From Octopus sinensis (Eukaryota), in assembly GCF_006345805.1 (NCBI RefSeq), contig NW_021826271.1:1-37397 (forward strand): a DNA stretch of 37,397 nt. The letters run 5' to 3'. This document shows positions 339 through 30,830 of this stretch, piece after piece (the first letter of the stretch is position 1; each line of letters begins with the position of its first letter). Under the pieces are notes generated by a model. That model did not search any database. It had not been told where the DNA came from and saw nothing but the letters and a program-made list of their open reading frames with translations. Made by a program: the position numbers and the translations under genes.

Positions 339-1045
339 TTATCAGATATATGTAAGAAAAAAAAAGGAAAATAGTGGTTGTTGTGTGCAGGCCTTTTTCT
401 TGGTCCCGCTTAAAATCAATATTTTTCATCTGATGTTGGGAACATACATCACTTGTGTTCCAGAGATGGTCATAGACTCTTCAAATTTTCTACATAATGA
501 GTAATGCTACCCCTAGGGGAAGAAAATATCTTTTCATAAGTAAATAACAAATGCCAATGATCGTTGCTTCAAGGGACATTACTCTTGATGATGTAGTTAT
601 GCTACTTTCACTTCATCTTCTATTACAGTTTTTTACAATGTCCATTAATTGCAAACTGCTAATATTTGCACATTAGTACTTCCTTGAGGTAGCCATGCCA
701 TTTAAATCACCTTTAATTATTTTTTAAATGCCTTCAGAAAATTTTTAGTTCAAATGCAGAGCAGGCATTTGAGTGTTTTCAATAAAAATACTGGTTCACC
801 AAAGTTACATTAGTGGATGAAGTAGGCAGAAAATAAAAGACCAGTGTATATGTGTGTGTGTGTGTGTTAGTGAATATGAGCTTAAAATTGAACTGCACTC
901 TTCAAAACTTGCACTAAGAATAAGTACAAGGTAAAATTACTACTTGCTTTTATTGCAAGTTGATGCAGGTAGTTTATCTCGTCCTCCTTCGACTTTTAGT
1001 TCATGCAATTGGAAAAAAATTGCATTATTTATGGGATGACCCAAT

Positions 1046-1193
1046 ATTCTTTCAGTTTCCGTCTACCAAATCCACTCACAAGGATTTGGTCAGCCTGAGG
1101 CTATATTAGAAGACACTTGCTGAAGGTGCTACACAGTGAGACTGAACCTGGAACCATGTGGTTGGTAAGCAAGCTACTTACCACACAGCCACT
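1046..1193 (-). mobile_element. Same SINE family, head portion only
   Basis: 141/146 identical to 2808-2953 by manual comparison. Confidence 0.8.
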
Positions 1194-2447
1194 GTATAGA
1201 GGTGCAGCAATATCAAAGGAAGGCTAACTGAGAAGATAGTTTTTGTGTGTGGCAAATGCTCAGGAGCAATAAACACTGAAAACGTGCAGAGAACAGCTTC
1301 TGTCACATTCCAGGGGAAAACTACAAGCAGCTGATAGCTTCCGTTACCTAGGTGACCAAGTCAGTAGCAGGGGTGGATGCTCTGAAAGTGTAGCTGCTAG
1401 AGTAAGGATAGCCTGGGCAAAGTTCAGAGAGCTCCTACCTCTGATGGTGACAAAGGGCCTCTCGCTCAGAGTAAAAAGTAGACTGTGTGGCACATGTGTG
1501 CAAATAGCTATACTACATGGCAGTGAAACATGGGCCATGACTGCTGAGGGCATGCATAAGTTTGCAAGGAATGAAGCCAGTTTGCTCTGCTGGATGTGTA
1601 ATATCAGTGTGCATTCACGACAGTGTAAGCTCCCTGAGAGAAAAGTTGGACTTAAGAAGCATCAGATGTGGTGTGCAAGAGAGACAACTGTACTGGTGTG
1701 GTCATGTGGTGAGAATGGATGAGGATAGCTGTGTGAAAAAGTGTCACACCCTAGCAGTTGAGGGAACCTACAGAGGAAGGAGACCCAAGAAGACCTGGGA
1801 TAAGGTGGTGAAGTATGACCATCAAATATTGGGCCTCACCGAGGCAATGACAAGTGACTGAGACCTTTGGAGATAAGCTGTGCTTGAGAAAACCTGGCAA
1901 GCCAAGTGAGACCATAACTGTGGCCTATGCCAGTGCTGTATAACCAGCCCATTTAAGAGTACCCTTCAATCATTGGACAATAAACTATGCTTGCAAAGAC
2001 CTGTTGAGGGAAGTGAATTCACTGTCATGGTCAATGACAGTACAACCTGATTGGCACCCGATCCAGTGGAGCATTAATAACACCATTCAAGCGTGATCGT
2101 TGCCAGGGCCGCTGACTGGCTCCCATGCCTGTGACACTTTAAAAAAAGCAACATTCAAGTATGGTTGTTGCCAGTGCCACTGGACTGGCTCCTGTGCATG
2201 TGGTACATAAAAAGCACCATTTGAGCATGGCCAATGCCAGTATCACCTGACTGGCCCTCATGCTGGTGGCACATAAAAGCACCTATACAGTCTAGGAGTG
2301 GTTGGCGTTAGAAAGGGTATCCAGCTGTAGAAACTTTGCCAGATCAGATTGGAGCCTGGTGCAGCCTTTTGGCTCACCACCCTTCAGTCAAACTGTCCAA
2401 CCTATGCCAGCATGGAAAATAGACATTAAACGATGATGATGATGATG
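1194..2447 (+). mobile_element. RTE-clade LINE, 5'-truncated, decayed (RT C-terminus, 3' UTR, (GAT)n tail)
   Basis: Translates across frameshifts (~1318, ~1620) as RCSNIKGRL..FVCGKC..FRYLGD..RIAWAKFREL..LHGSETW..WCGHVVRM..RPKKTW, typical of the RTE/BovB RT C-terminus. Internally repetitive 3' UTR ends in gatgatgatgatg at 2432-2447. Confidence 0.9.
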
Positions 2448-2549
2448 TATGTATATATATGTATATATAAATGTATGTATATATATGTATATATATTTGC
2501 ATATATATATATATGTATATGTTTATGTATATATTTTTTTTTGTTTCAT

Positions 2550-2741
2550 TGTTTCAGTCATTTGACTGTTGCCATGCTGGAGCACCACCTTTAGTCGAGC
2601 AAATCGACCCCAGGACTTATTCTTTGGAAACCTAGTTCTTTTGCTGAGCTGCTAGGTTACAGGGATGTAAACACACCAGCATTGGTTGTCAAATATACAC
2701 ACACACCATACATATTACTTATATATATGTACGTATGTATG

Positions 2742-2793
<52 letters not shown>

Positions 2794-2952
2794 TACGACG
2801 GGTTTCTTTCAGTTTCCGTCAACCAAATCCACTCACAAGGATTTGGTCAGCCTGAGGCTATATTAGAAGATACTTGCCGAAGGTGCTACACAGTGAGACT
2901 GAACCTGGAATCATGTGGTTAGTAAGCAAGCTACTTACCACACAGCCACTGT
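2550..2952 (-). mobile_element. tRNA-derived CORE-type SINE, full length, with internal (TA/CA)n microsatellite
   Basis: Minus strand begins AGTGGCTGTGTGGTAAGTAGC (A-box-like) ... GGTTCAGTCTC (B-box-like) ... CTTCGGCAAGTATCTTC (CORE-like), then a microsatellite, then a conserved tail ending ..GACTGAAAC. The same order recurs at three other sites. Confidence 0.75.
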
Positions 2953-2954
2953 AA

Positions 2955-3178
2955 AGAGCACTGGTGTTGGTGCCACATGAAAAGCATTGTATTGGTGCTA
3001 TGTAAAAAGCACCGTACACTTTATAAAAAAAATTTTGGCTTTAGGAAGGGCATCCAACTGTAGAAACCAAGCCAAAACAGATTATGGAATCTGGTGAAGC
3101 CCTGGCCTTGACAGTTCCTGTCAAGCTGTCTAACTCATACCAGCATGGAAACAGGCATTAAATGATGGTGATGATGAT
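2955..3178 (+). mobile_element. RTE 3'-end derivative (truncated LINE or SINE tail)
   Basis: aaaagcacc..ggaagggcatccaactgtagaaacc..ccagcatggaa..taaatgatggtgatgatg matches 2200-2447. Confidence 0.75.
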
Positions 3179-3502
3179 TATAATTTTTATTATTACTTAG
3201 CACTTGAGCTCAAATTCCCCGAGGTTGACTTTGCCTTTCATCCCTTTGGGATAAAAAAATAAGTAGCAGTCAAATACTGGTGTCAATATAATCAACTCCC
3301 CCTCCCCTTAAAAGCTGCTGGCCCTGTGCCAAAATTTGAAACCATCATCGTCATCATTATTTTCTTATCTATTTCTTTATATAATGGTGTGTTGAATTGT
3401 ATTATTTATATGAAATGATGTATGATTAATGTTTAATAATTTTAATTTTATGTAATTAGTGTTTTTTTTTATTTCTACTTAGTTGTTCTTATTTAATTTC
3501 AG

Positions 3503-4598
3503 ATATAATTACAACCGTGAAGATGAAGAAATTTACAAAGAGTTTCTAGAAATTGATACTGATTTCATTCCGCAAATTGTTAAATCTGTTGACAGACATA
3601 AAAAAGGTAGCATTTTAAGAGATCCAGAATGCTATGCTGATCTGCTGAGATTCTACGATGGTATTTGTGAATGGGAAGAAGGCAGTTCAACTCCAGTCCT
3701 GCATGTTGGCTGGGCAACACACTTAGTATTTTCATTGACTAAATTTGATCCACGAGTTCGACAAAGCATTGATCTGCACATTGAAGACAAAGAAGAAGAA
3801 TTGGAAGCTGAAGATACAATACCGGATGAGATGAAAGAGAATGCTGACAATGAAAACAATATCGAGAAAAATGATGAGACCTCAATTACAGAAAGTTTGA
3901 ACAAAAAATATTCTAAAAAGCGACGCCGCAAATCAGGACAATCACAGAAGTTTGACAACAAAAAACACAATAATAATAACAATGATGAAACTAGTGATCA
4001 GAATAAGATTTTGTTGGGTGTTACAAAGTCTTTTGAAAAGATCAATGGCAAGTCAAGTGAGGACCAAATTAAATGTGCTATAGAAGAATTAGTGTCCAAG
4101 ACTGAAGAAGATGGTCAAGATAATATCCCAAATTCTAATATAACTGCTTTGGCACAGGCATGCGGAGAGTCAATATTGAACCCTGATTATTTGCTTGGCA
4201 GTGGGGAGCCATTTGCTTTAGCTTCGGCTACAGGCGGCGCTACTAATGCAGATACTAAAGTTGATTACGATGAATTTCTCAGTACCAAGTCAAATGGAAC
4301 ACCGTTCTTTGGCATGACAGTGGATTCTCTTCTTAAAGCTGAAAGTCCTGCTGACATGATGATGTGTCGAAAGTCTGCTGATGGGGCAGCAAACTCTTAT
4401 GTGTTGCCAACTGTCTCCCTAGCTTTACGGAGTAAAAAAATGAAAGGTTTGAGGAAAATCTTGCAGTCAGCTAAACTGAATGCGAGTGCTATAAAACTTC
4501 AGCTTACTGCACAATCCCAAGTAGAATTCAGGCATAATAAGCGTGGTCTAGAAGCTGCTGATCAGACTTCAACAAGGAAACGTCTGCGACGAGAGTAA
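3503..4598 (+). CDS. MEN1: Menin, terminal coding exon (phase-2 start; upstream exons outside window)
   Basis: Acceptor ttatttaatttcAG at 3501-3502, then [51 protein letters not shown] and [24 protein letters not shown]. These match human menin motifs ([61 protein letters not shown]). Stop TAA at 4596-4598. The ORF-track start at 3483 is intronic. Confidence 0.97.
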
Positions 4599-5524
4599 CC
4601 AAATTGTTTTAAAACTCTTTTCTTCGATTTTATTTTTGTAAAGAAAATAGGAAAAAAATCTTTTTTGTTTTTATTTTGTTTGTTTGTTTTAAATATTGGA
4701 ATAGTCTCTTAAATCATGTCTTTGTTGAACATATCAGTTGATCTGGTTTCTCTATTCTATTGTATTCATTTATTTGTTCACACACACAAACATGCACATA
4801 ATCACTGCACACACATACACATGCAGCCAAGGTGTAAATTTTTTGTTTTAATGTGTATGTTTACATATACTTCACAGCTTTCAATTTTTTTTTTTAGATT
4901 ATTTATTTATCCTAAAATTTTATTTCTTAAAATGCATTACTCCCGACTATCTCTTGTATACTTTTCACATTTTAGCTGTGAAATGTAATTTCAAAAGAAT
5001 AACATATTGCTATGTTTATGTTTTGAAATTCGGAAATTTATGAATATTTGTTTAAAAGAAAGGAAGAAAAAATTGCAAGGCTCATTAATTAAGAAAATTT
5101 TAGAAAATTGCATGGAAAATATTTTAGACATTGATGAAATATTATATGTATTTTATTCTCTGTAATCTGTTTTTTGTCAATTTTGTTTGCTTTTTCTACA
5201 TTATTGCATTACTGCTATCATCTGTATTCCTTTCATATCTTATCTACAATGAATATAAGCCTTATAGTTTTCCTTTGTTAGGCTTATTTACAAAATATCT
5301 GAGTTGTTATAGAATGCTAGAATTATTAACAAACTTCATCTTCTACAACCTAGTTTTAACTTCTTGTCGATATAATTTCAGGTATATCAATACTTTTAAG
5401 CAAAAGCATTAATTACAGTTTTTTTTTGGGGGGGGGGAGTTATATTATATATCATCTGTTTGTGAAATATGGTATCATTGGTTATCAGTTTCTAACTGGC
5501 CAATTACTACTAGTTCCTGGTACT

Positions 5525-5846
5525 TCTAATCATAACTGGCATCCTGTCAGTTCCAGTTTATCGGATCAACTAAACAGCTTGCTCATGAAATTAATGTGCA
5601 CATGGCTGAGCACTCATCAGACACATGTACCCATAACATAGTTCTCAGGGAGACTCAGCATGACACAGAATATGACAAGGCTGGCCCTTTTGAATGATGG
5701 GTACAACTCATTTTTGCCAGCTGTGTGGACTGGAACAATGTGAAATAAAAAGTGTCTTGCTTTGAGGACACTACACATCGCTGGGAATTGAACTCATGAC
5801 CTTACAAAATATGGTCCAATATCCTAACTACTAAGCCATGCACCTT
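5525..5846 (-). mobile_element. Third tRNA-derived SINE family (partial opposite-strand copy at ~18225-18395)
   Basis: Minus strand starts AGGTGCATGGCTTAGTAGTTAGG (A-box) .. GAGTTCAATTCCC (B-box). The body is repeated in reverse at 18225-18395. Confidence 0.65.
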
Positions 5847-6074
5847 TCTGATCAAGTGGAATAAATACTACAAGGTAACTTTTGTTTGACACACTAATTT
5901 ATTGATAAGCAATACCCCACTATGTATTGTGTGTGTGTGTCTGTGTATATATACATACATACATAATAATAGAGGATAAAACTTTTTTTTTTAAATTTTG
6001 ACAGTGGCCAGCATATAAAATGATACCAATTAAGGTGAAAATTATACACACACACGCACACACAGTGACCAGCT

Positions 6075-6190
6075 TCTACACAGTTTTCACCTACCAAATT
6101 TCTCCCACACAGCAGTAGTTAACTCAAAACTCTGCTAGAAGACACTTGCCCAGGCACAATGGGATCAAACTTAAAATCTCATGACTAATC
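6075..6190 (-). mobile_element. Same SINE family, degenerate head
   Basis: cagttttcacctaccaaatt..tagaagacacttgccc. A further degenerate head lies at ~8905-9060. Confidence 0.55.
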
Positions 6191-7752
6191 TATTCACTAA
6201 AAATATACATATTTATAGCTTTGTTATAAATTAAAATAAATTTAAACAAAAAATAGGGGCTTAACAATGTAGCAACAAATACAAATATGTCCTGTTGTAT
6301 CTGTTGTGAGTATCTAATGATGACAAATTTTGATAGCAGGACACTGAAATACATCCAAACCATGTCAGTATGGAAAAATGTGGATGTAAAATTATGATGA
6401 TCATGAGGAGGATAATTAATTTTCACTCATTGCATCTTGCAGTTGTTTATGTATACTCAACGATAGCATCTCTGTTACAACTGTATGCCAAATGTATATC
6501 ATTATAACTATGAGCCAACCTTATGACCTTTCTGCAGTCACTCACTCTGGTAGAAATAACAACCAACTCTTTCTCATCTTAAATGCAAAAGATATATTGG
6601 AATATGTATACATGGATATGTGTCTAGAAAAAAAAAGGCAGGATATTCATGGTTGGAATGCATTCACCCAAGCATCTGCTTTATAACAGCTGGTCTGTAG
6701 CTAAGCAACAGTTACATCTTTGTAACGATTGTCAATAATCAAGCTTATATTTTCAGTCTTTTAGATCCATGGTTACCAGCATTTTACTACTTCATCTCAC
6801 AATTTAGTGAAAATAAAAATATTTTGATGTGTTTTGTGCATAAAGTCATGAAAGGTATTAAAACAAAAAAATATATTTTAGTCTATAAACATCCATTATG
6901 TACACCACAGAAAGCTATTAAGTACATAACTTCTTTATGAAGGTGCATGATCCAATGGTTAAGATGTTCAGCTGCATACCTTAAGATCATCAGTTCAATT
7001 CCAATACCAGGCTTCACTACTCAACTGTAAGTAAATACCAGTTGGGTGCTGGATGTTCGTCCAGGGTCATGAATGAGGGTTCTGAGAGGGAATCATGTCT
7101 GCTCATGATTTCATAGGTACTTAAATCAATTTGCAAAATCACAGTATTTGTTACCAAACCATACCTGCTCATGGGTAATGGTTTGCTGAACTGTATATCA
7201 CTTCTTTATTCAAAAAGCAAATATTGTTATCCAAATTTTTGTTTTGCATTTGAGTTAGTATTTTTCACACTTACTTCTCTCATATTCAGATTACTTTGTC
7301 AAATGTGGAGCTTATTTATTCACATTGTTTTAAATTTATCATGCATTATCTCATAGCTTCAAGATTTTTATGATGTGATTCTTTATTTTTAAAATGACAT
7401 TGTCGGGTAAGTGAGAAAGGCCTGATCTGGCTGCTCTGAATGTAAAACACGTAGAATATTGGCCAGATATAAGCTTGTTTAAATGGTAAAGGATTAAATA
7501 TAATTTAAGTTTTTCCCCATACACCTAGCTACAGCTTGTGACATGCCAGTGTTTGTGCATCACTGCTTTAACTGAAAGTCCACATCAATTCCTTGATTCC
7601 TAATCACACAGTTTTAATAGGTAAAATATAGAGTATGAATAATGTGGAAATGGCAAAAACAGTTTGCAAAGAATTAAAGATACGTTTCTGTTAATATCAA
7701 TAGAAAAAAAATCTTTTTGTTTTTAATGAAATAATACATACATACATATATG

Positions 7753-7788
<36 letters not shown>

Positions 7789-7867
7789 CATATACATGTG
7801 CATGAATATATTTATGTATACACATGTATGCATTTATCTATATATGTGTGTGTATTCATATATGCAC

Positions 7868-7927
<60 letters not shown>

Positions 7928-8129
7928 GTATGTACACACCCACCCACATGTATAATGTGTGTTTTTCTTTTACTCTTATATTTTCTCTAGTGTCTCATTT
8001 TTGGCATGGTTTCTATGGTTGAAAGCTTTTTCTTATGCCAACCACTTTACAGAGTGTGCTGAGTGTTTTTTCCATGGCACCAGCACTAGTGAGGTTACCC
8101 TGTAGCTTGCAAGACTAAAAAACCTCTTT

Positions 8130-8830
8130 GACTGAGAGGACAATTAGGATATAAGAAGGCTGCTTTATGTGAGGTATTGAGAAGTTGAAGTATGATAGGA
8201 GGATTAGGAATAGGCTTGTTGTTATAGAGGAGATTCATGGTTAATATGCATTTTACATTGGATTGTGGGCTGGTTAGAAGAGAGATAGATGTACCCTCCA
8301 GATAACGTGCTCAAGATGAATGAAAGAGAGAATGAAGATAGGTGAATCAGTAAAGGTGGATATGGTTGCAAGAGTTTGAAAGGAGAATGAGAGGAAAATA
8401 TAAACATAGGATGGAGGTAGTGAGATAATAATAGGTGAACAAGGGTTGGGATGATTTATGGTAAATATGAGTGGGAAGTTGATAAGAATGATCGGTTCAA
8501 TTGAAAGTAGCTCAAGAGAGTGGGTGATGATTGGCAATACAGAAATGGTGATATGAAATGATTTGTAGTGACCGGTTCTGATTTCATTACTTGCATCAGC
8601 AGGATAATAGAGTAGATTGGATAGTAATGGGAAATGAAGGGTGGACTTAAAAGTTTGCAAGCGTGTGGAGTGATTGAGAGATAGATAAAACAAAAGTGTT
8701 TGTGGAATGGTAAATGTGGAGGAGTGTTGATGGTAAGAACAAGATGTTGATGTTATTTGTAAGTGGCTTAGGAGAGAGACTCTGTTGTCTGGGTAGGAGA
8801 TAAAGAGAAAAAGCAGCTATTGTAGAACTT
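8130..8830 (-). mobile_element. Possible highly decayed Penelope-like element (GIY-YIG region)
   Basis: Strongly purine-skewed plus strand. Minus-strand pieces HSTN..IS.SL and GH..FHITISVLP..LELLSIE..LI loosely resemble the Penelope endonuclease. The similarity is weak and judged by eye only. Confidence 0.3.
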
Positions 8831-9302
8831 GTCGAGGTCACTGGTTGAGGGACCCAGTTGTATACATAGTGTGCATATACATGCTTCTACAGCCTCAGTT
8901 TTCTACATAGACATTGTGTGTGTGTGTGTATGTATGTGTATATACCAAATTTCACTCAACCTGAAAGTAATGGTAGAAGAGACTTCTCAAGGTGTCTCAC
9001 AATGGGATTTAACCCAGAATCACGTGGTTGTGAAGCTAAGTTCTGAATCACCAGTTCATGAGTGTCTATATATTTTCTTTCTTTTTTTTCTGCATTTCTG
9101 CCTGCACACCCATTTATAAGTAAACACTATGTTTAATTAATACACATACCAAATTTGTTAAAGATATAAATGAATTGATTTTGTTTTTTTTTTTTAATGA
9201 TTTCATATCTTTGAAATGATTATATAGGTTGAAATTACCTTTGTTTATATTTTCTTTCACATGTTACGCCACTTTTCTCTTTTTACTTTTTATTGTTTTT
9301 TT

Positions 9303-9505
9303 TAAGGTGGTGTGCCAGTAGAATTGTTAGCATGTTTGATAAAATGCTTAATAGCATTTCATCTATCTTTACATTCTGAGTTCAAATTCCACCAAGGCTG
9401 ACTTTGCCTTTCATCCTTTCAAGTTGAGAAATAAGTACCAGTTGAGCACTGGGGTTGATGTAATTAACTTACCCCTTCACCTAAATTTCAGGCCTTGTGC
9501 CAAAA
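9303..9505 (+). mobile_element. Solo copy of the ATT-associated SINE (others at ~3200-3345, 18672-18800, 25290-25500, 29690-29870, 37290-37397)
   Basis: Same A-box/B-box head and GACTTTGCCTTTCATCCTTT core. Confidence 0.75.
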
Positions 9506-9862
9506 TTTTTTTTTTCTCTCTTAATTTTCAAACTAGAAGTAAATTACAATAAATTTCAAGCTTTGTAGAAAAAAAAAACAGCCTAGATCCTTGATCATCT
9601 GACAAGATTTTTTTTTTTAAGAACTGTGTAAACTTATTAAAAATTATCATTTTACCAATCCTTTCTCTCTAGCCAAGCAGCCAGATTTATTTTTTAAAAA
9701 AAGATTTAGACATACCCTAGATAACCAGGATGATCATGATTGGAAAAACATGATTATAAGTTCTGCTTGAAATGAAGGATGACCTGGAGCTAACCACTAA
9801 CCAATATTAACATTACCAATAACAATTATATTGATATGTGATGTGATACCAATATATTAGCA

Positions 9863-10088
9863 TTTAGCCCTTTGCTTGTGAAAAGCACTTTCATAAGTTT
9901 GTTCTAAACACCCTTACTCATTTTCAAACTTTTAGTTAATCCTTATTTCATACATTCTGAGTAATATAAAGATTTCTTTTCATAAGTCCTATATTAATCT
10001 TCTCATTGAAAAACTTGGGAATGTGTATCGTATATGTTGTACGGATGTTAGGGAAATATGTCCTGTGTATCACAGGCAAAGGGTTAAA
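9863..10088. mobile_element. Second piggyBac-type MITE
   Basis: Left tttagccctttgcttgtga versus right tcacaggcaaaagggttaaa (imperfect TIRs with CCC/GGG ends and TTAA-like flanks). The interior is unrelated to the 26098 family. Confidence 0.55.
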
Positions 10089-10949
10089 GAATTTGTATTA
10101 CTGCTACTGTTGTTGTGGTCAGTTGGTTAGCTTTTTTTTTTTTTAATCTTTTGTGGTGATGGTGGTAAGTGTGAGGTGGGTAATAAGTACTATTGTTGCT
10201 CTTGTTTTTGTTATCCTTAGTCCAGTAGCAATTCAGATAAAAATATTCTAGTTCTGAATTAAAAGTGCTTTCTGGAAATGTAATCTAAAAAACCAATCTT
10301 GTTTGAAGTGGCAGTGGTAGTGGTTGACTTGAGCTTTGTACAAGGTACAACCATGTATGCATGTGGAACTAACAAGGCCAACCATTGGGTGTAATGTTCT
10401 TGGGCACTATATACTAAGGGATTCATGGAAAATTATGATTTACTTTTAAAATAAAATGAAATAAAATTGTTACCTTCTACATTTTAAAAATATTCCCCCA
10501 CTTTCACACATTTTAGTATTTACTGATCTCATAATTTTTAAGATCGGTAAACAAGGGGTACTTATATGTCTGTGTATATACATTTTGTGTGTGTATGTGT
10601 GTGTGTATGTATATATATATATCATAAACTTTTTTCCTTTTTCTTTTTTGTTTAACATTATACATACTAATACACAAACACACAGCTTTCTTTTCTTTGT
10701 ACATATGCATATGTGTGTGTGTGTGTGTGTGTATATATATTACAAAGTGACTCAAAGTCTCAGAGTTTTGTGCATGGCACTCTCTGCCCTTGAGTGACTT
10801 TGATGATTAAAAATAAAAAATGTATATGTATAGATGTGTTTGTGTATATATGCATTATATATATATATTTATATGTATTTATGTATGTGTATGTAATATA
10901 ATATCTATATGTATAACATATAAATTTTGTGTGTATGTATGTATGTATG

Positions 10950-10987
<38 letters not shown>

Positions 10988-11307
10988 TATAGGGCATCCG
11001 GCCATAGAAAATCTGCTACAAACTGTGACCCCTGTAAGTATGGAGAAATGAATATTAAATGATAATAATATTTATATATGTGTATGTATGATGAATATAT
11101 ATATATATATTATTAAATATATATTTATATATTAATATATATATATATTAATATATATTTATATATTATATATATATATGTATATATATTTATATATATA
11201 TTAATATATATATTTATATATTAATATATATTAATATATATTAACGGTGGTGCATCAGCATAGCCGCAGTTATGAGCTGGAACTACAGCAATATATATAT
11301 ATATGTA

Positions 11308-11369
<62 letters not shown>

Positions 11370-12601
11370 CATACATACACACATATATAATAGTTTGTAG
11401 CTGGGGTCCAGCATTGATTCAGTTCCTTGTTGAATGTGTGTATGCTTATGTCTATGTGTGTGTGTATAATATATATATATATATTATATATATATATATA
11501 TATATATTATATGTCTTTGTTTTTTATGTATAATTTTGTGATATTATAAACCACGTGTTTATTGATGGATTGTTATAGTTTTTTGCTTATAGCACTGAAA
11601 TTCAAAACCAATTTTTACTTGTATAGTGATATATCTACATTTTTTTTTGTTTTGAAAAAAAAAAATCATCTTTCTGTACTTAGTAACCCTGTCTTTTAGT
11701 ATTACATATATTTTGTTTTGTTTTTTTTGTCATAGCTACTTGAATATATGTTTTCTAAACTTTTTCTCCTTTTCTTTTGGGATATCCAATATGTATTGTC
11801 TTTCATATATTCATTTTACCTTTTTTTCTGTCAGATATATTTTCACTCATTACTTCAGAAAGAAAATGAGTGCAAAACAAAGCAAAAAAAAAAAAAAAAA
11901 AATTATGATGCATTGTCTTTCAGTGAAGTCCAACTCCAGTCCAAATGATTCCGTCTTAGTGCTGCTTCTTTTTTTCTTTGTTTTTCTATTTTTTTTGTTA
12001 AATATAACAATTTAGACTTTCAAAAATGTCTAAGTCTGCTGTTGTCCTATTTAAAATATTTTTCTTTTTCTTTATTTTCTTTTTTTTTTTTTTTTTTTTT
12101 TTTTGCAACTATATTTTTCGGTCCAATCTCAGTGTTCGTTCTGATATTTTACACGATGTTAACTTTTGACTTTCAAGTGTATTATTGTACACTCTCATGT
12201 ACCCGTGAAAGACGCATTTTACTTTAGCATTTAAACGCATACACACACACACATACACACATTTATATATACATACATGGCATCATATACTTGTTGGCAA
12301 GTCAAGTACCGCATTAGTTCAAATGTAATAACAACATGCATACATACATACATGCAAATATAAACACACAATGCACATATGCATTATTGCATTTGTTGTC
12401 CAGAACCATAGTGGTTCGAACCAAGTAAAGGTCATTTATCATTTTTTTACTTTTACTTTTATATGTTCAGTCTTTCTCTCTTTCTCCACTCTATCTCTCT
12501 ATATATATGTGTGTATATGTATGTGTGTGTATATATATATATTATATATATATATATATACATACACACATATATATATATATATATACACACACACATA
12601 C

Positions 12602-12629
<28 letters not shown>

Positions 12630-12638
<9 letters not shown>

Positions 12639-13468
12639 CATTTATATATATGTTTGTATATATATGTATATATGTTCGTATATATGTATATATATATATA
12701 TATGTGTGTGCACACATACACATACACACACACTTGGATACATGCATTCTGGCTATACTCTTTCCCTTCTACTTACCTCAAAGAAATATTTTAGGTTACT
12801 AATTTTTACCTAATGAATATTTTCTTATTTTGTTTTTTCTTTATAATATTTAAACAAATTATCATTAGTAATATGTAATTATTTCTTTTCCCTACACCCT
12901 CCACTTTTAATAACATCCGGTGACACAAGTTTTGTAGATATACATACTCTTTCTGGTGCTTTGTTACTCTAAAACAAAAAAAGTGAAGAAAATAAAAGAA
13001 AAAAACACAAACAAAACCTACTATCTGCCTCATTTGATCTCACTTGAATCCTATTCTGAAGTGAAAAAGAAAGAAAAAAAATATGATTAGTTTATTTTCA
13101 TTCTAAAATACATTCTGAACCAAAATATTAGTTAGAAATATTTTTTAACTAATTTCACTTTCATATTGTCAAATTCCATTTCATTTTCAAAACTGTTCTT
13201 TTTATCCAATATCAAAGAAAAAAAACAACAAAAAATGTCCATTTATTTTGTTCAGTTTTTTTTTCTTTCTTTATACATCACCCACAAAACATCTTTGATT
13301 TTATTTTATTCAAATGTATTGTGTAAATATAAAGTTATATTATTATACAAAACAAAATTTATTATTAATAATAAAAATACCCTATTTTATCAATTTTTCT
13401 GTTATATAACAAAGAAATAATATAATTCCAAAAATATCTATTTCATGTTATCTTATTAACAAGTGTTT

Positions 13469-15544: not shown

Positions 15545-16090
15545 ATTTTTACATTCTGAGTTCATGATGCACCAAAGGCAACTTTGCTTCTTATCCCTCT
15601 GGGAGTCAATAAAATAAAGTACCGGTGAAGTATGAAGTGTTAATGTTCATGTAACTCACTAACCCTTCTAAAAATTGCTTCCCTTATGCCCTTGTTAGAA
15701 AGAGTTAATATTATTAGGACAATAGAGGGGTAAAATTAAAAGAGTACAACACTAAATGTTTTGTGGTATTTATCATATGTTCCTTTACATTGTGAGTTAA
15801 AGTCCTGTTACGGCTGACTTTCGCTTTTATCCAGGGTCGATAAATTAAGTGCAGATCATGCACCAGGGCTTGTTATAGTCATTCTTCATCCTTCCCTAAT
15901 ATTCAGCTTTTTTTGCCATATTTCAATAGTTTATTAATACTATTTTCATTGTTGTTGTTGCTTTCTTTTATATGAGCTGTTTCAAGTCTCACTCAGAGAC
16001 CTTAAGTATCAGCCAGTTGGACATTTTACTATAGGTGTTATCTATAAATAGCAATGATATATTCTGCAAGGAGACCAAAATCTGAGAACT

Positions 16091-26313: not shown

Positions 26314-27784
26314 TGAATCTGGTGTTTGTAAAAATAATGTACTTACATAAAATTGTGATTGGAAGTTGACTTATACATTCTCATGAATATTTTGATATAT
26401 CTGTAGTGTCCTGCCTTACCTGCAGCTTCTATAACCTGATAACTAACTTGGCATGCTTTGGGTTTCAACAGCTAGTTGATCCTATTAACCACTTGTTTAT
26501 TTGTTCATTTCAGATTATCATTAATACTATAGAACATTAGCAATGTTACTGTTAGAGACTTTGGTCCAAGTCTCATATAATAGAAGCAACATTAATTGAA
26601 TTAACCATTTTAATTTGTTGTCCATCTTCTTTCTCCTCTTTCCATCTCCGTTTCTCTCTTCTATTCTCTCTGTCATAAAGGTTTAGGGAGTTTTTCATTC
26701 CCATACCCTTTAATTAGCTTACTTTGTGTTTATCCCTTTTTGTATGTTTTTTTAAATATTTTTTTGCCCTCTTACTTCCAATCTCTGACACGATATTTGT
26801 AATTATGGAAACTGGAACTACTATTAACTGTATATTTCTACAAGATTTGTTACCCATAGATCAACTCTACCTTCTTTCCTACCATAATTTTACCCCCCCT
26901 CTCTCTTATTTGCTCTTTATTTTCTTTCTTCAAAGTTGTTTTCTTTAAAAGAAAATCTTCGAGAGAGAACTCTAATACCTTCGCTTCAATAATGTTTCCA
27001 TTTCTTATGTATGATGGATGTATTTACACTTTATGGTACCTATTAACTGTTTCATAGTCAAGGCCAGCAGCTGTTTGCCTTTCTCAAAGACAAAGTGTGG
27101 CACTGGTAATAATGGTTTAATAATACTGTCCTAACATAACCTCTTGGTGCCTTTTCTTTCTTATAAATTTCTTTCCCTACTAAAGTGATTTTTTTTCTTT
27201 TTTTTTTCTTTAAAGAAAGGCATCAAATTCTAAAGCCTTTTATAATAAGAAATATTTAGTATTTTATCAGATTTTGGCACAACACTCATATAAAACGACA
27301 TACAAATATAAATGCTCAGGTACATCACTATATGGACATGGCCTGAAAATGAAAATATTAACGGAATATATGTATGCAAACATGCATTTAGCTTCAAATA
27401 CTTACCATGCATGATTATTATATTAAACAAAATTATGGTCTACTCGAGTTTCCCCCTGCAGTTAGACTGACCTTAACTGTGACTGAAATGGAGGGACCTG
27501 TAGTATTTATAGAGTTGGTGTGGAGGGGTGCACAGAAGCATTGAATTTTTTAGCTGCTAATATTTGCACATTAAAGTATTTCTAACTAATTAATTTAAGC
27601 TATAATTAATTGAATACGATTCTGTATATTGAATACAAATGAACAAGTGATGAACCACACAAACTCAAAAGACAGATGTGTTATAAACGAAAACACAAGA
27701 TAAGTTCATTTTCATAGTTGTTGATAAATAGAAAATTAGTTAATTATTGATAATATTGACAAAGATAGCAATGTTTAAATTTGA

Positions 27785-28678
27785 TTAATCTTTCTCTTTC
27801 AAGAGAGTTTCTATGTCATTAGCCAAACTAATTTCATTCAGGAATGTCTGGTGGTTACCATCGTAGTAATTAATGCAGACTTTGGTGCACAATTTTGAGA
27901 GGCCATAATCAGACGATAAAGGGAGAGAGTCTGTTGGTTCCGTTTTGATTCGTAATAAATGGATGCAACCATTGTATTTTTTTCTGGGATTGTATTGATA
28001 ACCAGAATGGCAGTTCTGGATGAAGTCCCGACATTTCTGTGTCTGAAAGATTCGTAGGACTTCCGTCGTTGTTGAGAATATTGGGTGTTGTTTCATTCGT
28101 AGTTTCGTATAAACCTTCAACCAGTTTTTCTTACCTGATGGAGGGCTCATTAATGGTCGTCCAAATAAATACTTAATGGCCTACCTGAGTTTTGATTCAG
28201 TACCTTTTAGTTTCAGTAAAGATGAGCGAATCAGTAATTTAGTGTCCTGACTAATTGACTTGTAATTACTAATGAAGTTCAGGATGAAACCAATATCCAG
28301 GAACTCTTTGAACAGTTTAGTCGAGCAATCTGTTGGTAATTCCCTGGTTATATAATTACAGTGAGAATGGAAGTAATGTGGAGAGCCATCGAACAGGATC
28401 AGAACCTCAACTGGTTTGTTGCCGGTTTCTAACTGTAGGGCCATTTCGAAAGCTATGCAGGCACCGAAAGAATAACCAGCAAGTCTGTAGGGACCACAGG
28501 GGTTAGCAGCCTTCATTATGCAAATATAAAACGCTGCCATTTCCTCCACTGAATTTCTTGGAGTTTTATCAGTCAATCTAATTCCAAAACATGGTATTGT
28601 TAGCATCCGTCCCAAGGATTTCAATACATGAACATCACCTGTTACTGGGTGGACAATAAAATGTATGATATATATTTT
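27785..28678 (-). pseudogene. Orphan FASN-type (type I FAS / animal FAS-like PKS) thioesterase domain with one in-frame TAG at 28181-28183
   Basis: ORFs 28181..28624 and 27785..28150 are in the same frame, joined by TAG plus 10 sense codons (AIKYLFGRPL). The merged translation FIVHPVTG..GPYRLAGYSFGACIAFEMALQL..ILFDGSP..YNPRKKYNGCIHLLRIK..DYGLSKLC..DGNHQTFL aligns with the human FASN TE (FLVHPIEG, GPYRVAGYSYGACVAFEM, LFDGSP, YTPKAKYHGNVMLLRAK, DYNLSQVC, EGDHRTLL). An upstream in-frame TGA lies at 28679-28681, with no ATG or AG acceptor before FIVHP. Confidence 0.85.
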
Positions 28679-28885
28679 TCAATCCTTACATTATAATACT
28701 ATATATAGAATGTATAGCTTCATATTTTGATTTCTCCTGTTTGTCTATATATACATTTGTTTGGAGTTGCAAACAAGAGAATGGGTACTCAATATACACA
28801 CTACAGCTTTTTACTATGTATTATCATATATAACCAAGAATCCGAGTAGTTACAGAATAAATCCTCATGTTCTTTTATTCCATTA

Positions 28886-30144: not shown

Positions 30145-30274
30145 CTTGTGTGTGTGTATTATATATATGTGTGTGTGTATATATATATTTTTATATATGT
30201 ATTCATATATGTATATGTGTATATATATATGTGTGTATATGTATATATATATATGTGTGTGTGTATATGTATAT

Positions 30275-30830
30275 CATCATCATCGTTTAACGTCCGCTTT
30301 CCATGCTGGCATGGGTTGGACAGTTTGACTGAGGGCTGGTGAGCCAGAAGGCTGCGCCAATCCAATCTGGCAATGTTTCTACAGCTGGATGCCCTTCCTA
30401 ATGCCAGCCACTCTGAGAGTGTAGTGAGTGCTTTTTACGTGCCACCAGCACGAAGGCCAGTCAAGCAGTACTGGCATCAGCAACGCTTGAATGGTGCTTT
30501 TTACGTGTCACTGGCACGGGAGCCAGTCAGGTAGTACTGGCAATGACCACACTTGAATGGTGCTTTTTATGTGCCGCCGGCATGGGTGCCAATCAGGCGG
30601 TACTGTCATTGGCTATAACAATGACTTCATTTGCCTCAACAGGTCTTCGTAAGTGCAGTTTACTGCCCAATGATTGAAGGGTCCTCTTAAATGGGCTGGT
30701 TATGCTGCACTGGTATAGGCCACAGTTACGGTCTCATTTGGCTTGCCAGGTCTTCTCAAGCACAGCATATCTCCAAAGAACTTGGTCACTTGTCATTGCC
30801 TCGGAGAGGCCCAACATTCAAAGGTCGTGC
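30275..30830 (-). mobile_element. RTE 3' UTR copy
   Basis: catcatcatcgtttaacgtccgctttccatgctggcatgggttggacagtttgac..ggtgctttttacgtg..caacaggtcttcgtaag..aatgggctggttatgc is the reverse complement of ~1830-2447. Confidence 0.85.

Follow-up and report, generated by a model that had tools for sequence, protein, structure and literature searches.

A probable young retrocopied pseudogene holding the thioesterase part of a fatty acid synthase-like gene in Octopus sinensis

The stretch of DNA analysed here (the window) is the entire unplaced Octopus sinensis contig VCDQ01004077.1 (GCA_006345805.1), 37,397 bp in length. Its plus strand carries the last exon of menin, whose product matches the C-terminus of O. 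vulgaris menin CAI9734583.1 without a difference and that of O. bimaculoides at 97% identity. Window 742-12703 aligns with the O. vulgaris MEN1 locus (OX597829.1) at 98.6% identity, and the colinearity with the O. vulgaris MEN1 3' end continues to window position 15826, i.e., over the first 15.8 kb of the contig; the O. vulgaris locus that was compared spans to the equivalent of this same position, short of the retrocopy described below. By its sequence, the contig evidently belongs at the 3' end of MEN1. Approximately 23 kb downstream of the last menin exon, and on the opposite strand, lies a retrocopied thioesterase (TE) coding region that is embedded in genomic flanks of ~27 kb and ~9 kb. 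Elsewhere in the window, tandem 66–68-nt units of a SINE-like repeat occupy positions 2084-2213 and 30428-30609 (also 30272-30611), and a GC-richer block (46% GC) at 1273-1858 on the plus strand holds two overlapping open segments with motifs similar to those near the C-terminal end of a non-LTR retrotransposon ORF2; a Pfam search with these open segments gave no significant match. The features that are referred to in the following are:

3483..4598, plus strand: last exon of menin, a 371-codon open reading frame (PF05053, E 8e-58)
28679..28693, minus strand: two stops in frame, a short distance 5' of the copy, TAA at 28693-28691 and TGA at 28681-28679
27570..28664, minus strand: the entire retrocopy, 1,095 nt, made up of the 26 nt at the end of exon 11, exons 12–17, and ~214 nt of 3'UTR
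28639..28664, minus strand: tail of parental exon 11 and 5' truncation point, from alignment to the parent
28604..28606, minus strand: first in-frame ATG (codon 25), after the first β strand, FIVHP
28533..28638, minus strand: equivalent of exon 12, which neither the O. sinensis nor the O. vulgaris parental locus retains
28412..28532, minus strand: equivalent of exon 13, with GYSFG, also absent from both of these parental loci
28313..28411, minus strand: equivalent of exon 14, with LFDGSP, from alignment to the parent
28146..28312, minus strand: equivalent of exon 15, with the TAG, 98.7% identical to the O. sinensis and O. vulgaris parents
28181..28183, minus strand: premature stop TAG, where the parents have TGG (Trp)
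27970..28145, minus strand: equivalent of exon 16, with most of a ~29-residue family segment, from alignment to the parent
27785..27969, minus strand: coding part of exon 17, with DGNH and the TAA, from alignment to the parent
27570..27784, minus strand: copied 3'UTR, 93.5% identical to O. bimaculoides (locus L001, 43549-43762)
27543..27569, minus strand: flank 3' of the copy, GTGCAAATATTAGCAGCTAAAAAATTC, with only an A6 run, 18 nt past the copy end

The TE frame runs on the minus strand from 28678 to 27785 (297 codons), and its terminal TAA is located at 27787-27785. As the initial annotation had proposed, the two open reading frames at 28624..28181 and 28150..27785 share one frame in translation, and the nucleophile, Asp, and His motifs that it had pointed out (GYSFG, LFDGSP, and DGNH) are all found in the minus-strand translation, with the catalytic Ser, Asp, and His codons at 28471-28469, 28390-28388, and 27853-27851, respectively. 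Its report of a single TAG and no frameshift was borne out as well: the sole internal stop is the TAG at 28183-28181 (codon 166, in the context CTC AGG TAG GCC), and alignment to the spliced parental mRNA gives no indels in the 876-nt coding sequence and one 1-nt indel in the 3'UTR. The in-frame TGA that had been noted ahead of the domain is also present, and is accompanied by the TAA listed above.

With X at the position of the stop, the translation matches the Pfam Thioesterase family PF00975 at E 6.5e-21 (76 bits, against a curated cut-off of 26.4), and the human FASN TE structures 4z49, 2px6, and 1xkt at E ~4e-37 in two aligned stretches; judged by these scores, the resemblance is far beyond chance. 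As for the human FASN TE (2px6/1xkt/4z49; PF00975), the copy encodes an α/β-hydrolase TE in which the Ser of the GxSxG motif, the Asp, and the His can be aligned, GYSFG with GYSYG, LFDGSP with LFDGSP, and DGNH with EGDH. It differs from the human domain by a low overall identity, by the broken frame, and by ~29 residues before the last third that have no human counterpart (query 171-215 versus 16 human FASN residues). The initial annotation had described a ~30-residue insertion at this position. The extra residues relative to human FASN are real, but they are an ancestral family trait rather than an insertion in the copy, since the O. bimaculoides parent and the relatives from Solemya, Haliotis, Gigantopelta, and Pinctada align across the segment in one stretch. 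In animal FAS, the TE is the C-terminal domain of the synthase and follows the ACP, whereas no other part of a synthase accompanies the copy in the window: when six mollusc relatives of the parent and two ~2,500-aa proteins were used as tblastn queries, the TE was the only match. The earlier statement that no KS lies upstream agrees with this search, where the KS- and AT-bearing relatives match the TE alone and no KS or AT is found in the window.

A word-indexed protein search gave weak and mostly unnamed matches from metagenome and other databases, and by itself would have wrongly suggested that the domain has no close relative. An exhaustive HMMER search identified O. bimaculoides XP_014775595.1 (LOC106872932, 1,022 aa; E 1.6e-174), with 88% amino acid identity in a single stretch over residues 732-1022, the ~29-residue segment included. 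The TE region of the O. bimaculoides locus (L001) is divided into seven exons over 13 kb, and a unique GT-AG solution yields the protein. The corresponding parents are XP_036356706.1 in O. sinensis (locus L003, CM016860.1) and CAI9716890.1 in O. vulgaris (locus L005, OX597815.1), and the retrocopy locus is therefore unlinked to its parent. In the parental family, which consists of ~1,950-aa “fatty acid synthase-like” proteins, Pfam detects KS, AT, and TE domains and a weak ER-like ADH_zinc_N match, and gave no match to KR or ACP in the members examined. KS domains are carried by the O. vulgaris protein P0289. For Haliotis rubra XP_046574357.1 (P0010), the Pfam matches are KS, KS_C, KAsynt_C_assoc, PLAT, AT, weak ADH_zinc_N, and TE, and the placement of a PLAT/LH2 domain (residues 483-591, E 6e-23) between KS and AT makes for an odd FAS-like architecture. 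With regard to the FAS-type source suggested in the initial annotation, the TE matches FASN TE structures, but the parent is a divergent mollusc FAS-like gene and not canonical FASN. By domain description, not by phylogeny, the parental family (Haliotis, Gigantopelta, Pinctada, Solemya, and Octopus), with only KS, AT, TE, and the weak ADH_zinc_N match, can be likened to the mollusc AFPK “mo-clade 4”, in which only KS-AT-TE is predictable (Lin et al. 2024, PMC10764717). It differs in that cephalopods are not mentioned in PMC10764717, and in that the O. sinensis and O. vulgaris gene now stops before the TE.

Comparison of the intron pattern with that of the parental exons, which had been put forward as a check, revealed that six parental introns are missing from the copy. 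The blastn search against O. bimaculoides L001 returned seven abutting HSPs, the six GT-AG introns (0.7–3.3 kb in O. bimaculoides) are exactly absent, and all six junctions are seamless. The copy is truncated at the 5' end, where it starts 26 nt ahead of the exon 11/12 junction; upstream of 28664 no homology to the O. bimaculoides and O. sinensis parents was detected, with scores below those of shuffles. At the 3' end, homology to O. bimaculoides genomic DNA extends 20 nt past AATAAA, which coincides with the expected cleavage site, and the parental AATAAA itself has become AATTAA in the copy (27595-27590, minus strand). The absence of a poly(A) tail, already noted in the initial annotation, holds for the flank GTGCAAATATTAGCAGCTAAAAAATTC, and no convincing target-site duplication was found, the flanks sharing at best a direct repeat of 6 exact nt, or of 10 nt if a mismatch is allowed. 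Both marks may have been lost by decay, or a tail may be dispensable for the reverse transcriptase. Given the six exact intron losses, the end at the poly(A) site, the 5' truncation, and the new locus, the copy would have arisen via an RNA intermediate, which on the sequence data is the only simple explanation of its structure. Introns within the copy itself, either at the TAG (donor-like CAG/GTAGGC) or accounting for the extra 29 residues (CAG/GTAAGA ... AG), were also considered and rejected, as both stretches are exonic and colinearly translated in the O. bimaculoides parent. As a separate observation, the copied 3'UTR differs by 6.5% from O. bimaculoides, compared with ~18–21% at synonymous sites of the adjoining coding sequence, and the UTR appears to be better conserved than the silent coding sites.

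The parental genes of O. sinensis and O. vulgaris differ from that of O. bimaculoides, which retains an intact TE. By sequence comparison, the remnants of the TE region are located as follows:

L003 (O. sinensis) 46534-46700 and 54619-54990: remnants of the parental TE region
L005 (O. vulgaris) 75477-75640, 79697-79795, and 85054-85300: remnants of the parental TE region

In both species, exon 11 carries a GAA>TAA change at the position of residue 690, and the homology to O. bimaculoides stops at the same point, 71 nt before the end of this exon. Exons 12 and 13 were not found at either parental locus even with 7-nt words. Exon 14 is present only in O. vulgaris, as an inverted, decayed remnant with six private changes that include GAT>AAT at the catalytic Asp, and in both parents exon 15 is interrupted, 14 nt short of the donor, by one and the same SINE-like insertion. 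The list of lesions reaches as far as exon 15, with exons 16–17 lying beyond the ends of L003 and L005, and the annotated parental proteins of both species finish at ...SFADE. Because the lesions are common to two independent assemblies, they can be regarded as real, and the parental FAS-like gene has evidently lost its TE-coding part in O. sinensis and O. vulgaris. The retrocopy is the best-preserved copy of the TE domain found in O. sinensis. With regard to repeats at these loci, the SINE-like family seen at window 2084-2213 and 30428-30609 has many occurrences in the parental FAS-like loci, and is of the same kind as the insertion in parental exon 15, as connected by transitive BLAST matches via L001 34793-34988. 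A ~252-nt unit that is single-copy in O. sinensis (L003 53280-53508) is repeated about nine times in tandem in a parental intron of O. vulgaris (L005 81697-83714).

Between the copy and its parent in the same genome, divergence is ~1%. The exon 15 equivalent matches the O. sinensis and O. vulgaris parents at 98.7% identity (2/155 mismatches) and the O. bimaculoides parent at 91%. One of the two mismatches is the stop itself, which is TAG in the copy and TGG in the O. sinensis, O. vulgaris, and O. bimaculoides parents; at the other, the parents have changed from CGC to TGC. As all three parental genes have TGG, the nonsense change arose in the retrocopy. The initial annotation had argued against editing on the grounds that the stop aligns with Ala, which is true of human FASN; the true parental codon specifies Trp, and the argument does not survive. 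The retrocopy also lacks the SINE-like insertion in exon 15, and because this insertion is common to both parents, retroposition predates the insertion as well as the O. sinensis/O. vulgaris split, which corresponds to ~1.4% divergence. When changes are polarised with O. bimaculoides as outgroup over 253 comparable nt (the exon 14 remnant and exon 15), two are specific to the copy (one synonymous and one nonsense), seven are specific to the parents, and one is ambiguous; the excess in the parents (7 versus 2–3 in the copy) is not significant.

A dN/dS ratio near one had been suggested as a mark of a pseudogene. The calculation for the TE region of the copy versus the O. bimaculoides parent gives dN 0.056, dS 0.207, and ω 0.27, with 17/16/39 differences at the three codon positions, and is uninformative in this respect, as the divergence from O. 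bimaculoides almost all predates retroposition. The upstream 667 codons of the O. bimaculoides and O. sinensis parents yield essentially equal values (dN 0.049, dS 0.238, ω 0.205), and we therefore assign most of the divergence of the copy to orthologous change during the period as a constrained gene. Selection on the copy itself cannot be measured because of the small number of copy-specific changes. Its own share of ~1% amounts to roughly 6–12 substitutions over 876 nt; 3.4% of random substitutions in the TE coding sequence create a stop, and the probability of one stop after 6–12 substitutions is 0.19–0.34, while a rough estimate gives less than one expected frameshift. The copy is too young for an open frame to be a sign of selection, and the intact frame and Ser-Asp-His triad reflect youth, not selection.

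As for coding potential, the first in-frame ATG is located behind the FIVHP strand, a β strand that carries an oxyanion-hole residue in human FASN TE. Between the TGA at 28681-28679 and the FIVHP codons there is no AG, and thus no canonical splice acceptor, so that an upstream exon cannot be joined without deletion of the FIVHP strand. A polypeptide ending at the TAG would be devoid of the catalytic His. The sequence U-A-G is a favoured ADAR context. In a 300-nt local fold, the RNA at the TAG is no more stable than shuffled sequences (z = +0.33, a value that refers to a local duplex only). In the protein searches, neither O. sinensis nor O. vulgaris yielded a protein with the retrocopy TE, and exact look-ups of the 121-, 141-, and 147-aa open reading frames in other assemblies gave no record. 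We infer that the retrocopy is not expressed, and the lack of a start codon, the two in-frame stops upstream, and the absence of a standout RNA structure make rescue by editing or readthrough unlikely.

In all likelihood, the TE region in the window is a processed pseudogene, i.e., a young, 5'-truncated retrocopy of the 3' end of a FAS-like mRNA. This is the reading that the initial annotation had ranked first, and it has gained from the absence of introns, the start within exon 11, the end at the poly(A) site, the position at the menin locus, and the ~1% divergence. Reverse transcription of a spliced, polyadenylated mRNA of the LOC106872932 orthologue, presumably by the enzyme of a LINE, would have taken place in the ancestor shared by O. 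sinensis and O. vulgaris; transcripts of a full-length RTE-class LINE occur in the octopus neural transcriptome (PMC9115989). What was inserted downstream of the menin gene is just the 3'-most 1.1 kb, with the TE domain and the 3'UTR, giving a copy with no promoter of its own, no start before the first β strand, and two in-frame stops upstream. The TGG>TAG nonsense change was gained later, and the parental gene has since lost TE exons that the copy preserves. Some observations speak against a pseudogene, namely the missing poly(A) tail and target-site duplication, the 876 nt free of frameshifts, and the intact triad, and the destroyed parental TE exons in the same genome would fit a hand-over of function; the larger number of changes in the parental remnants than in the copy points the same way, though without significance.

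Such a hand-over is the essence of a functional orphan retrogene, in which the TE would have been separated by domain fission to act in trans as a discrete enzyme, leaving the parental exons free to decay, with the UAG edited to Trp, read through, or representing a sequencing error or a null allele. The parental TE region is wrecked in O. sinensis and O. vulgaris alike, the SINE-like insertion, at least, is younger than retroposition, purifying selection (ω 0.27) acted on the TE until roughly when the copy was made, and the triad is intact with no frameshift. Furthermore, UAG>UIG editing would give back the ancestral Trp, and restorative (“harm-permitting”) editing of G>A substitutions has been discussed for coleoids (PMC6881472). 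Against this, youth by itself accounts for the intact frame, a start at codon 25 drops the first β strand, two in-frame stops lie at most five codons upstream with no AG acceptor before FIVHP, the fold near the TAG does not stand out from shuffles (z = +0.33), and neither a TE protein from the two species nor a record of the three open reading frames was found in the searches. We therefore consider a functional retrogene very unlikely, and its most specific form, where a TE split off by retroposition is the sole survivor in the O. vulgaris/O. sinensis lineage and A-to-I editing makes the UAG read as the ancestral Trp, extremely so.

A transcript that makes no protein, with the copy forming part of a lncRNA, a 3'UTR, or an antisense RNA downstream of menin, would be in keeping with the location ~23 kb past the last menin exon on the opposite strand, and with the many lncRNAs and repeats that octopus genomes transcribe (PMC9115989). 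Nothing in the sequence demands such a transcript, however, and there is no unusual RNA structure, so that it appears highly unlikely. An artefact, whether from cDNA contamination, mis-assembly, or a DNA-level segmental duplicate minus introns, could be suspected from an unplaced contig of only 37 kb and from the missing poly(A) tail and target-site duplication. The chance of this is close to negligible: the copy has ~27 kb and ~9 kb of genomic DNA on its two sides, the contig is colinear with O. vulgaris MEN1 over its first 15.8 kb, and the joint, exact loss of six introns together with the poly(A)-site end is the signature of an RNA intermediate. Present-day cDNA contamination in particular was rejected, as the copy holds exons 12–13 that are missing from the parent in the same genome, and differs from that parent.

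Read as a processed pseudogene, the copy shares with LINE-mediated examples the spliced colinearity, the 5' truncation, the poly(A)-site end, the new locus, the lack of promoter and start, and the early nonsense change. It differs from these in that no poly(A) tail or target-site duplication is recognisable, and in that one domain of a multidomain synthase has been copied. The likeness to orphan retrogenes (PMC3548309, PMC5803294) is that the parental sequence for the TE part is lost or disabled while the retrocopy persists, but in this case the persisting copy has a broken frame and no start, and the parent has lost its TE-coding part only, not the whole gene. In comparison with ADAR amber/W recoding (UAG>UIG), the copy has a genomic UAG at an ancestral UGG position, but no duplex at the site in the 300-nt fold.

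If the retrogene-plus-editing alternative were true, the locus would be an extreme case of restorative editing, combined with domain fission through an RNA intermediate, and would put the “harm-permitting” view of coleoid editing to a clean test in nature. As a processed pseudogene, the copy is routine and of a well-known kind. It nevertheless preserves the TE exons 12–13, which are no longer seen at the parental loci of O. sinensis and O. vulgaris, and it shows that the parental mRNA was still properly spliced shortly before the O. sinensis/O. vulgaris split, and for this reason it helps to date the recent loss of the TE part. The parental family is poorly understood, with only KS, AT, and TE recognisable (PMC10764717), and the disappearance of its release domain from one octopus lineage is relevant to the role of the enzyme.
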